This document shows, piece after piece, positions 13,494-58,476 of a DNA stretch of 64,000 bases (position 1 is its first letter; every line of letters begins with the position of its first letter). This DNA comes from Hemiscyllium ocellatum (taxonomy: Eukaryota): positions 10,281,534-10,345,533 of the forward strand of contig NC_083409.1 of assembly GCF_020745735.1 (NCBI RefSeq). The letters run 5' to 3'. The notes beneath the pieces are model-generated. The model ran no database searches and was not told where the DNA came from. It was given only the letters and a program-made list of their open reading frames with translations. Made by a program: the position numbers and the translations under genes.

Positions 13494-13822
13494 CTACACA
13501 CATTCTGATCTCCTGATGCTCTTGCTGAGGGGAGAGGGGAGGGTCACGTGGGTGAGGGCACAGGAGAAGCGAGCGTCAGACTCCCAGTCAGACCCAGAGA
13601 GGGTCAGCAAGGCTGCTGACACTGTAAGTGCTGTCCGAAGCTCGCAGGTAGTTGCTGGTCTGAACCCCGTCCAAAATGACTGCACCGTCCTTCTTCCACT
13701 GCACCTCCAGCTCATCGGGATAGAAGTGATTGGCAAGGCACACCAGGGTGGCAGAGCACTTGGCATTGACCTGCTCTGGGGAGGGGGTAGCAGGGTCAGC
13801 TTGGGCTGAGAGTTCTCACGGC
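13494..13822 (-). pseudogene. IGKC: Ig kappa-type (type III/NS4-like) constant exon with two compensating frameshifts
   Basis: Acceptor ctcttatctttcag|GC CGT GAG AAC. Restored frame reads RENSQPKLTLLP(P)SPEQVNAKCSATLVCLANHFYPDELEVQWKKDGAVILDGVQTSNYLRASDSTYSVSS-LLTLSGSDWESDARFSCALTHVTLPSPLSKSIRRSECV*. There is a -1 in the C run at 13783-13787 and a +1 at about 13609-13610. Confidence 0.93.
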
Positions 13823-13954
13823 CTGAAAGATAAGAGAAACAGTTTTAATCCCTGCCATATGGAGGGATTTCAACTCTCAGAATATTCATTGATAAAATGT
13901 TTGAACATTTGTAGCCAATACCTAACAAACCCCAGAAAAGAACAGGCATTGTTT

Positions 13955-22391: not shown

Positions 22392-22425
22392 TCAGTCTGA
22401 GTTTGGTTCCTTTACCGAATATGTG
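22392..22425 (-). pseudogene. IGKJ: Ig kappa-type J segment (unrearranged), GC donor
   Basis: CAC ATA TTC GGT AAA GGA ACC AAA CTC AGA CTG A|GCAAGT = FGKGTKLRL; the paralog has A|GTAAGT. Confidence 0.92.
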
Positions 22426-22457
22426 AGAGCTCCCAGTGCAGAGGCTGTACAAAAACC
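22426..22457 (-). other. J recombination signal: nonamer plus 23 bp spacer, heptamer missing
   Basis: GGTTTTTGT (22457-22449), acagcctctgcactgggagctct (23 nt), then CACATAT instead of CACTGTG. Confidence 0.8.
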
Positions 22458-22900
22458 TCTGCTCTCTGTTTCCCCCGTCACTCTCAACCTCTCCCTGTCT
22501 CTCTCTGTCTCTGTCTATTCTTGGTCAATCTCATTCACTCCCTACCCCTCTCTGTCTCTCCTTCATTCATATGTCTTTCTCTCTCTGTCTCCCTGGGTTG
22601 TGTCCAGCTACTCTCGGGGGTTTGTGAAATTTAGTTTTCATTGTTAAATCTTGCAACTGTTCTTCACATGCGGCCATGGAGTGTAAGAGGGAAACTTGAG
22701 GCCTTCAGTGAGCGGTGGACACCACATAGACTGGAGTGTGTAGTGGACAGTGACAATCCCAGCATGGGGTAATTTGCTCAATTTACTTTATATATAACTG
22801 TGGATGTGTCAGTGCAGGAGGTGGAACTGTCTGTCCATTATTATACATTTCATATAACTGTTGGATGTGTCAGTACAGGAGGTGGTGTTGTGCGTGTTGA

Positions 22901-22928
22901 GGTTTTTGTATGGCACTGTATCACTGTA
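22901..22928 (-). other. V recombination signal with 12 bp spacer, heptamer mutated
   Basis: TACAGTG-atacagtgccat-ACAAAAACC. Confidence 0.92.
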
Positions 22929-23224
22929 AAGGCTGCTACTATACTGCTGACAGTAATAGTCAGCGACATCCTCATTCTGAACGTTGCTGATTGTCAAGGT
23001 GAAACTGGTCCCTGATCCACTGCCGGTGAATCGATCCGAGACTCCTGTGAATCGAGTTGCTGCATCATAGATCAGGAGAGAGGGTTTCTGACCTTCTCAC
23101 TGCTGGTACCAAGCAAGGTAGCTGCTAATGCTTTGACTGGCCGTACAGGTGATGGTTGCAGTCTGGCCCAGTCCCACTGACAGCACCGGGGGAGACTGGG
23201 TCATGATGATGTCCCCACTGATAC
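22929..23224 (-). pseudogene. IGKV: Ig kappa-type V exon (cluster 1) with in-frame stop in FR2
   Basis: [98 protein letters not shown]; TGA at 23099-23097 where the paralog has CGA. Confidence 0.95.
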
Positions 23225-23410
23225 CTGAGGGGTCAGAGAGAAACACAGTCAAGTCAGAACTGTCACAGAAAGAGCCGGTCAAATGAGAGATTTTTGGAGA
23301 CACTGAGCATTCCTCTGGTTTCAGCATTTTCCCTTCAATCACAAGTCAGTGGAATTGGAGTGAAATGGAGAGCAGCTAAAGATTCAAGGTGGAAGGAGAG
23401 AGATTTGTAC

Positions 23411-23459
23411 CTGCGACACAGAATGCCAGGGGCCAGATCAGCTGGATGTGTGAAATCAT
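23411..23459 (-). CDS. IGKV: Leader exon of cluster 1 V gene
   Basis: ATG...GCA G|GTACAA = MISHIQLIWPLAFCVA; 186 nt intron to cag|GTATC. Confidence 0.9.
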
Positions 23460-23519
23460 GGTGTGTGCTCCTGTCCCTGTGCCTGGTTCCTGATAAACTC
23501 TCCCTTCACTGGGCTCTGC

Positions 23520-23600
23520 TTTATAAAGCTGCAGCCTGAGAGAGCCTGACTGGGTGTTCCTCAGTATGTAAATGGCATCAGGCAGAGAGAGCCACGTCAG
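23520..23600 (-). promoter_or_regulatory. V promoter: TATA box, octamer variant, CRE-like site
   Basis: TATAAA 23525-23520; ATTTACAT 23573-23566 (octamer ATTTGCAT with one change); TGACGTGG; all the same in cluster 2. Confidence 0.75.
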
Positions 23601-23610
23601 CCCCTCACAC

Positions 23611-23613
<3 letters not shown>

Positions 23614-23650
<37 letters not shown>
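23614..23650. repeat. (CT)n microsatellite just upstream of the V promoter
   Basis: Direct observation; the paralog is a (GA)-rich tract near 56846-56905. Confidence 0.9.
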
Positions 23651-56865: not shown

Positions 56866-56902
<37 letters not shown>

Positions 56903-56914
56903 AGTGGAAGTGTG

Positions 56915-57000
56915 AGGGGCTGACGTGGCTCTCTCTGCCTGATGCCATTTACATACTGAGGAACACCCAGTCAGACTCTCACAGGCTGCAGCTTTATAAA
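56915..57000 (+). promoter_or_regulatory. V promoter of cluster 2
   Basis: TGACGTGG at 56921; ATTTACAT 56947-56954; TATAAA 56995-57000; ATG at 57061. Confidence 0.75.
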
Positions 57001-57060
57001 GCAGAGCCCAGTGAAGGGAGAGTTTATCAGGAACCAGGCACAGGGACAGGAGCACACACC

Positions 57061-57109
57061 ATGATTTCACACATCCAGCTGATCTGGCCCCTGGCATTCT
57101 GTGTCGCAG
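57061..57109 (+). CDS. IGKV: Leader exon of cluster 2
   Basis: MISHIQLIWPLAFCVA G|GTACAA, identical to cluster 1. Confidence 0.92.
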
Positions 57110-57295
57110 GTACAAATCTCTCTCCTTCCACCTTGAATCTTTAGCTGCTCTCCATTTCACTCCAATTCCACTGACTTGTGATTGAAGGGAAAATGCAGAA
57201 ACCAGAGGAATGCTCAGTGTCTCCAACAATCTCTCATTTGACCGGCTCTTTCTGTGACAGTTCTGATTTCACTGTGTTTCTCTCTGACTCCTCAG

Positions 57296-57621
57296 GTATC
57301 AGTGGGGACATCATCATGACCCAGTCTCCCCCGGTGCTGTCAGTGGAACAGGGCCAGACCGCAACCATCACCTGTACGGCCAGTGAATCTGTAAGCAAGT
57401 GGGTTAGCTGGTACCAGCAGCGAGAAGGTCAGAAACCCTCTCTCCTGATCTATGAAGCAACAAAACAATTCACAGGAGTCTCCGAGAGATTCACCGGCAG
57501 TGGATCAGGGACTAGTTTCACCCTGACAATCAGCAACGTTCAGAATGAGGATGTCGCTGACTATTACTGTATGCAGTATAGCAGCTCCCCTCGTTCGGTA
57601 AAGGAACCAAGCTCAGACTGA
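57296..57621 (+). CDS. IGKV: Pre-joined kappa-type VJ exon; V intact, junction out of frame, stop at the last exon base
   Basis: [108 protein letters not shown]. Junction CCT-CG-TTC GGT AAA GGA ACC; no RSS at the junction; donor GTAAGT at 57622. Confidence 0.95.
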
Positions 57622-58476
57622 GTAAGTAAACCTCAATCCTCTGTTATTAACCCTGTCAATACTGAAACACACTTTCTAAAATACAGTTACTGATTTGTTG
57701 AAGGTGTTAGTGGGAAGCTGCAGTGAATGAAATGGTTGATTGAGGAGCACTGTGTCTAACAGGGTGTCCAACTGTATTTCTTTACATTCATGCCCTCTTT
57801 AAAAAATGCAAGATATGAGTCAGTAAGTTTTACTCACCGTGTGGAGGAGCTCTGTCCATTTGCAGCCTGTGGTCCCATTCCTGCAGCATGGAGTGAAATC
57901 AGTGAGTAGCCTCCTGCCAGTCTCAGTGTGACGGACACGGGGCAGAGTTTGATGTGAGCTCTGGCTCCCTGTCCCAGTCTCTGATCTCACTGACCTCAGC
58001 AGCAGCAGCAGCAGCAGCAGCAGCACAGTGAGACATCGAGCTCCCACCTCCCCCAGCTTTAACTCTGCTCAATCACACAATCACAGAATTGTTACAGCGC
58101 ACAAGGAGACCATTCCGTCCATCCTGTCTGGACTAGCTCTCTGAATGAGCAATTGACAGAGTGACATTCTCCTGCCTTCTCCCTGTCACCCTGCACATTG
58201 TTCCTTTTCAAATAACAGTCTCATTCCCTTCGGAATATTCCAATTGTAGCTGCCTCCACCACACTCTCAGGCAGTGCATTCCACACCTTAAACACCCACT
58301 GGCCGATAAAGTTTTCCCTCATCTCAGTTTTCTTACTTTTTCAATTACTTTCAATCTGTGGCCTCTCGGTCTCAATCCTTTCACAAGTGGAATCATTTTC
58401 TCCCTATTGACTCTGTTCCAGGCCCCTCCTGATTTTGAGTTTCTGGAACAATTCTCCTCGCTGCCTTCTCCAAAGA

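Follow-up and report, generated by a model that had tools for sequence, protein, structure and literature searches.

Inherited V-family polymorphism as the probable source of CDR-focused divergence between two shark kappa light-chain genes, one of them germline-joined

The divergence between two kappa light-chain genes of the shark Hemiscyllium ocellatum, clusters 1 and 2, is concentrated in the CDRs, and this concentration, together with its runs of adjacent changes and its serine codon switches, is best read (with a probability of roughly 0.8) as inherited polymorphism of the V family that predates the V-J join of cluster 2, not as hypermutation of the joined gene. The codons concerned are common to unjoined genes, the differences carry no excess of tandem changes or of hotspot sites, and the paralogues are old. 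Selection would be the cause of the contrast between the CDRs and the rest of the V unit (the scaffold). Both genes lie in the window, which is the whole 64,000-nucleotide stretch of DNA analysed here, and all coordinates are positions in it.

Cluster 2 lies on the plus strand and, to judge from its colinear flanks in the genome assembly, is a germline-joined VJ gene of the kind described by Lee et al. (2000). Its parts are as follows:

57061-57109, plus strand: leader exon, ATG at 57061, read directly
57110-57295, plus strand: 186-bp leader intron, belonging to the conserved scaffold
57307-57375, plus strand: FR1, 3/69 differences from cluster 1
57376-57408, plus strand: CDR1, with Ser codon 28 TCT at 57388-57390
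57409-57453, plus strand: FR2, one difference from cluster 1 (CGA in cluster 2, TGA in cluster 1)
57454-57474, plus strand: CDR2, E A T K Q F T, 5/21 differences from cluster 1
57475-57570, plus strand: FR3, 5/96 differences from cluster 1
57571-57591, plus strand: V-encoded portion of CDR3, M Q Y S S S P; its Ser codon 94 is TCC (57586-57588)
57592-57593, plus strand: junction CG, read directly
57594-57621, plus strand: J segment, TTC GGT AAA GGA ACC ..., read directly

The V exon starts at 57296. The leader intron has the ends GT..AG, and spliced leader-to-V contigs of a related organism omit 186 bases; it differs from that of cluster 1 at 5/186 positions and from those of the Chiloscyllium punctatum genes discussed below at 4-14/186, and the two parts of the leader are identical in the two clusters (0/60). 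The alignment of cluster 2 with cluster 1 breaks off after 57585 and resumes at 57594; cluster 2 lacks the 0.5-kb spacer and the two recombination signals. The V-J join is out of frame, with a V-frame stop at 57619-57621, and the splice donor GT is at 57622. The CG at the junction fits an origin either from a V end (CCT CGA stands before the heptamer in L001 and L007, two of the C. punctatum genes) or from a germline J (...ACG TTC GGT).

A self-comparison of the window places the paralogue of cluster 2, cluster 1, at 22935-23617 on the minus strand (683 bases, 94.3% identical). The two genes form the arms of a large inverted duplication and stand head to head. The parts of cluster 1 are:

13497-13844, minus strand: C-kappa exon, with two internal frameshifts
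22392-22419, minus strand: J segment, downstream of V, with 509 bases (22420-22928) between it and the V coding end
22901-22928, minus strand: V recombination signal, TACAGTG, 12-base spacer, ACAAAAACC
22929-23224, minus strand: V exon, unjoined, CDR1 Q S I S S Y L A
23225-23410, minus strand: leader intron, 186 bp

Cluster 1 carries an in-frame TGA in FR2 (23099-23097) where cluster 2 has CGA. Its J has a degenerate heptamer and a GC splice donor (22391-22390). A tblastn search with the C part of the H. ocellatum protein P0017 matches the two ends of its C exon in frame -3 and, at 95% identity, its central 59 residues in frame -2, and the tail of this exon is identical to the tail of the H. 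ocellatum gene models. The first base of its V heptamer (22922-22928) is T and not C, while all eight C. punctatum heptamers are CACAGTG; the same TACAGTG variant recurs in another H. ocellatum cluster, that of protein P0036 (read through as 'LYSDT'), so it is an inherited feature of the lineage and not a private lesion. P0036 also has the CDR2 and CDR3 of cluster 1 along with the variant heptamer read-through. Both clusters are pseudogenes.

Several smaller features of cluster 1 may be recorded here. The J (22392-22457, minus strand) reads CAC ATA TTCGGT, having lost the 3' half of its heptamer and the first J codons; in related organisms the germline J is CACTGTG, five bases (GCTTA or GCACA), then CG TTCGGT. 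The C-kappa exon stays open in one frame, and its two frameshifts, which compensate each other, leave the central part of the domain scrambled. The TGA in FR2 replaces the CGA (Arg39) of the family and is a CpG transition; a TGA stands in FR2 of the nurse shark split NS4 pseudogene S15 as well, so that this Arg39 codon may be a recurrent nonsense site.

By homology, both clusters are assigned to the cartilaginous-fish type III (NS4, kappa) light-chain family. The best protein matches of the V region are shark proteins named 'immunoglobulin kappa light chain-like' (80-85% identity), the top ones coming from C. punctatum (84-85%) and H. ocellatum, and for the V region of cluster 2 the identity with nurse shark NS4 (protein P0027) is 83%. 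The V is homologous to that of NS4/type III, and its relatives carry V-set and C1-set domains. Cluster 1 has the type III/NS4 layout of split leader, 186-bp intron, one V with a 12-spacer signal, 509-base spacer, J and C. Spliced kappa transcripts of the family, though not of cluster 2, occur in the RNA-like run X16 of another organism.

The nearest known system is that of nurse shark NS4 (Lee, Fitch, Flajnik and Hsu 2000, PMC2193156), in which leader, 186-bp intron, V, about 500 bp of V-J spacer, J and C are arranged in the same way. About 10% of its roughly 50 genes are germline-joined, and its pseudogenes are both joined and split, among them a joined gene that is out of frame and a split one interrupted by a TGA in FR2 (PMC2193156); split, germline-joined and dead members of both kinds thus occur in one family there as here. 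The length of the leader intron in clusters 1 and 2 and in all eight C. punctatum genes equals that in the nurse shark. The present case differs in that it concerns a hemiscylliid shark and in that a split and a joined gene, both dead, are adjacent in an inverted duplication. Moreover, the closest split/joined pairs of the nurse shark are up to 99% identical (PMC2193156), whereas the present pair is one of old paralogues whose CDR versions differ.

The differences between the two V genes had been counted in a preliminary description, and alignment with a codon-by-codon script gave exactly the same figures: 9/210 in the frameworks (FR1 3, FR2 1, FR3 5), 14/24 in CDR1 codons 27-34, 5/21 in CDR2 and 6/21 in the V part of CDR3. 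With CDR1 taken as Kabat 24-34 (14/33), the CDRs differ at 25/75 positions and the frameworks at 9/210 (Fisher P=8e-10), in agreement with the focus on the CDRs described there, and the CDRs are also more diverged than the adjoining non-coding arm (79/886, P=3e-8). Both serine codon-family switches are likewise as described: codon 28 is AGC in cluster 1 (23132-23130) and TCT in cluster 2, and codon 94 is AGC in cluster 1 (22934-22932) and TCC in cluster 2. By simple counts, the codon differences comprise 12 non-synonymous and 3 synonymous ones in the CDRs, and 3 non-synonymous, 5 synonymous and 1 stop in the frameworks.

This contrast recurs throughout the genes compared. Among ten genes (the two clusters and eight V genes of one other species, C. 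punctatum, L001-L008, compared as DNA), CDR1 and CDR2 together are more diverged than the frameworks in 45/45 pairs, unjoined pairs included, by a ratio of 1.7 to 8.2 (median 3.4). The cluster 1/cluster 2 pair has the highest ratio (8.2) and so lies at the edge of the family distribution because its framework distance is the smallest, and not because its CDR distance (19/54) is unusual.

All eight C. punctatum genes are unjoined: behind each V end stand a heptamer, 12 bases of spacer and ACAAAAACC or a sequence close to it, with the J about 0.45 kb beyond the V end wherever the contig is long enough. Most of the states of cluster 2, both serine switches included, are present in these unrearranged genes. 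TCT at codon 28 is shared by cluster 2 and four of the eight (L001, L002, L003 and L007), the remaining four having AGT (two genes), GAC and GGC (one each). The CDR1 of cluster 2 reads GAA TCT GTA AGC AAG TGG GTT AGC, that of L001 GAA TCT GTT AGC AAC TAT GTT CAC, and that of L003 CAA TCT GTT AGC AAC TAT GTT AGC. In CDR3, cluster 2 has ATG CAG TAT AGC AGC TCC CCT CG; L002 has ATG CAG GAT TAC AGC TCC CCT, L004 includes TAT AGC AGC TCC, and L007 has CAG CAG TAT AGC AGC TAC CCT CGA, directly followed by the heptamer. Unjoined C. punctatum genes also have the cluster 2 states GAA (codons 14, 27 and 50), GAG (codon 60) and AGA (codon 61); the GAA GCA of CDR2 is common to L008, and in FR3 the GAG is also in L007 and the AGA in L005 and L006. 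The changes are therefore not confined to the rearranged gene, TCT, AGC TCC, ATG CAG and GAA (codons 27 and 50) all occurring in unjoined C. punctatum genes. The preliminary description had itself stated that the pattern would be ordinary family diversity if these CDR1 and CDR3 codons also stood in germline V genes that are not joined, and C. punctatum has such genes for the serine codons; its fallback, that the CDR states predate the join, holds.

Contigs of four other organisms (A, B, D and E are among their labels) were placed on 56950-57660; they are short and unphased, and a joined or unjoined origin cannot be assigned to them. The exact CDR1 of cluster 1 (CAA AGC ATT AGC AGC TAC CTT GCT) is present in 72 contigs of organism E, whose run includes spliced leader-V contigs and is therefore RNA, and in 5 contigs of organism D. 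In organisms B and D a single letter is read at each position across 57394-57408, which suggests that the AGC AAG TGG GTT AGC of cluster 2 exists elsewhere. Organism A has unjoined V ends in which '...CCT CG' runs into A CACAGTG and in which '...AGC TCC CCT A' is followed by CACAGTG. Similar CDR1 versions occur in proteins of the basking shark Cetorhinus (SQSVSNYVS) and the horned shark Heterodontus (SQSVSKYVA), so the CDR1 versions appear to be old. The same-species relatives P0017, P0035 and P0036 were compared as proteins only.

Which gene lies nearest to cluster 2 varies by segment, cluster 1 being the nearest outside the CDRs and C. punctatum genes in CDR1 and CDR3. In the non-coding parts and leader, cluster 2 differs from cluster 1 at 8/404 positions and from the nearest C. 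punctatum gene (L002) at 10/406; in the frameworks the figures are 9/210 for cluster 1 and 12/210 for the nearest C. punctatum gene (L004). In CDR1 the order is reversed, with 14/33 differences from cluster 1 against 5/33 from L003 and 6/33 from L001, and in CDR3 there are 6/21 differences from cluster 1 against 3/21 from both L002 and L007. The CDR1 of cluster 1 is nearest to that of L004 (6/33) and is identical at the protein level to those of the C. punctatum proteins P0013 and P0014.

The preliminary description had suggested that hypermutation-like changes may have become fixed in the germline. On this reading, AID-type hits would have fallen on the joined gene or its ancestor, either in germ cells or through a somatic gene that returned to the germline. 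Tandem substitutions make up as much as about 60% of shark hypermutation (Lee 2002, as cited in PMC8781386), many of the cluster 1/2 differences are adjacent, and WRC/GYW sites are dense in the CDRs (29% of positions, against 9% in the FRs), all of which speaks for such an origin. The superficial likeness to shark somatic hypermutation (Lee et al. 2002, as cited in the same paper) is limited to these runs of adjacent CDR differences, which in clusters 1 and 2 occur at the frequency that their density predicts, are common to unrearranged genes and are not focused on hotspots. When the differences are shuffled within each region, 10.3 +/- 1.8 adjacent differing pairs are expected and 12 are observed, which is no tandem excess (P=0.25), and in CDR1 alone the figures are 7.6 and 8. 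Comparison of joined with unjoined genes, which had been put forward as a check, gives no difference either: over the 45 pairs of ten genes, the ratio of observed to expected adjacency in CDR1 is 1.34 for pairs with the joined gene and 1.42 for unjoined-unjoined pairs. The statement that the changes fall on AGC AID-hotspot motifs is not borne out as an enrichment, as the CDR differences are no commoner at WRC/GYW sites (9/25 on the cluster 1 sequence, 5/25 on that of cluster 2) than the site content would give (29% and 24% of CDR positions, respectively). Since the supposedly mutated codons stand in unjoined genes of another species, and since neither adjacency nor hotspot use sets the joined gene apart, germline-fixed hypermutation appears extremely improbable.

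What is private to the joined gene also speaks against it. Private letters were defined against nine genes (cluster 1 and the eight C. punctatum genes) and the contigs of the four other organisms. The letters found only in cluster 2 are at 57267 (intron), 57350 (FR1, an A that gives CAG at codon 15), 57393 (CDR1, synonymous), 57467 (CDR2, an A that changes CGA to CAA at a CpG, a transition) and 57513 (FR3, a T). These few isolated single bases, spread over intron, frameworks and CDRs, look like ordinary decay. Reading of the context finds no WRC/GYW motif at private positions 57267, 57467 and 57513, and none at 57289, a position not private in the strict sense. Private changes are about as few in cluster 1, and include the CGA to TGA stop. 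Two further candidates for changes private to cluster 2 were rejected: AAG TGG (codons 31-32), considered as a tandem change, is read in organisms B and D, and GAA (codon 27) is present in L001.

The flanks of the two genes bear on their age. Identity between the two clusters is 88.8% in the J-C introns and 66-89% in other parts of the arms, while the J-C intron of cluster 2 is 90.4% identical to that of L003 and 91.8% to that of L007, cluster 1 being no closer. The possibility that the clusters are recent twins whose CDRs changed fast was rejected, as the flanks are 11-34% diverged, as far apart as each is from the C. punctatum genes; by this measure the two are old paralogues. The non-CDR V region is nevertheless much more alike (17/614 differences, against 79/886 in the flanks; P=9e-7). 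This 98% identity is equalled across species, for example by L002 at 10/406, and family-wide the differences amount to 2-8% in the leader intron and 1-8% in the promoter, against 8-25% in V-J spacers and J-C introns; a regulatory role or homogenisation may account for the conservation of intron and promoter. The close identity outside the CDRs is thus that of a conserved scaffold and is no sign of recent duplication.

In the explanation favoured here, promoter, leader, 186-bp intron and frameworks would be held near-constant throughout the family by purifying selection, possibly with homogenisation, while the CDRs would be a limited set of old and very different versions, common to clusters and species and kept by long-term diversifying selection. 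Cluster 1 would have inherited a 'QSISSYLA'-type CDR1 and cluster 2 a 'QSVSxxVS'-type, and their CDR2 and CDR3 would likewise be versions carried by other unjoined genes. Some exchange between clusters may have contributed. Later both genes would have died and gathered a few scattered single-base changes. The pattern is that of classical germline V families (Detanico et al. 2016, PMC5118421; PMC6872785), in which frameworks are conserved and CDRs evolve faster than the adjoining non-coding DNA. CDRs rich in AGY and in hotspots are found across vertebrates (PMC5118421), and serine codon-set switching, with both serine sets at variable positions, is described as well (PMC6872785); the CDRs of clusters 1 and 2 are similarly rich in AGY serines and WRC hotspots and use both serine codon sets. 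The local point is that two pseudogenes are compared here, so that the pattern is inherited and not currently maintained. What is seen here is V-family diversity of the classical kind, in a family (NS4/type III kappa) whose joined and dead genes were described in 2000.

Exchange between clusters could have gone further, with CDR tracts or the whole 0.7-kb V unit copied in from other family members by patchwise gene conversion after the inverted duplication. This is a tentative possibility, and would be a contributor to the inherited polymorphism favoured here rather than an exclusive alternative to it. CDR1 and CDR3 types are reassorted among genes, an SV-type CDR1 going with an MQ CDR3 in cluster 2 and with QQ in L001, and an SI-type with MQ in L002, P0014 and P0026 and with QQ in cluster 1 and P0013. 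In addition, 45% of informative site pairs are incompatible (PHI-type test, P=0.04), and conversion would also account for the greater likeness of the non-CDR V region than of the flanks. However, the PHI-type test gives a weak signal, and incompatible sites also arise where hypervariable positions mutate repeatedly; purifying selection explains the identity of the scaffold equally well, and that identity is as high across species. A donor with a long identical tract was not found among the genes compared. Of the suggestion in the preliminary description that CDR patches were copied from other clusters, the part that stands is that the CDR states are common to other clusters, the copying itself being compatible with the data and weakly indicated.

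It is very unlikely that the V of cluster 2 is an assembly artefact, a chimera of reads from paralogues. The best public run contains 0.50 of the words of its CDR1-CDR2 region and 0.58 of those of an 801-base stretch, and several cluster 2 letters are never read in the four other organisms, as a chimera might lead one to expect; the source individual's reads, though, are apparently not among the runs searched, so that such absence says little. Moreover, the same mosaic is present in the independently assembled C. punctatum contigs, and the private changes are spread over intron, frameworks and CDR as in a real diverging copy.

The value of these observations is mainly negative, the pattern being a textbook one for V families. 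Germline-fixed hypermutation, had it been true, would have had consequences for the activity of AID in germ cells and for the old soma-to-germline debate; the lesson is that CDR-focused, seemingly tandem divergence between shark V paralogues should not be taken for a hypermutation footprint unless it is polarised against the rest of the family. A further idea concerns the 0.7-kb V unit, whose likeness between clusters and species exceeds that of the adjoining V-J and J-C non-coding DNA three- to fivefold while its CDRs are reshuffled. If short-tract conversion is frequent, dead joined genes might serve as a store of CDR cassettes, which would be an analogue, on the scale of evolutionary time, of the chicken pseudogene pool; this is an improbable conjecture.

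A few minor observations concern the surroundings of the two genes and the public records. A (GA)n microsatellite lies just upstream of both promoters (56866-56902 and about 23610-23650) and forms the upstream edge of the high-identity V unit, and the J-C intron of cluster 2 contains a (CAG)9 run at 57999-58025. The H. ocellatum gene model P0017 ('kappa light chain-like') reads ...MQHSSWPLRSVKEP..., with its J in the same out-of-frame reading as that of cluster 2 and a junction one codon longer; it is probably another germline-joined, out-of-frame gene that has been forced into a gene model. Finally, a public database lists P0010, an 89-residue fragment of shark-type kappa leader and V, as a protein of Salmonella enterica; its source is almost certainly shark DNA that contaminated a Salmonella enterica assembly.
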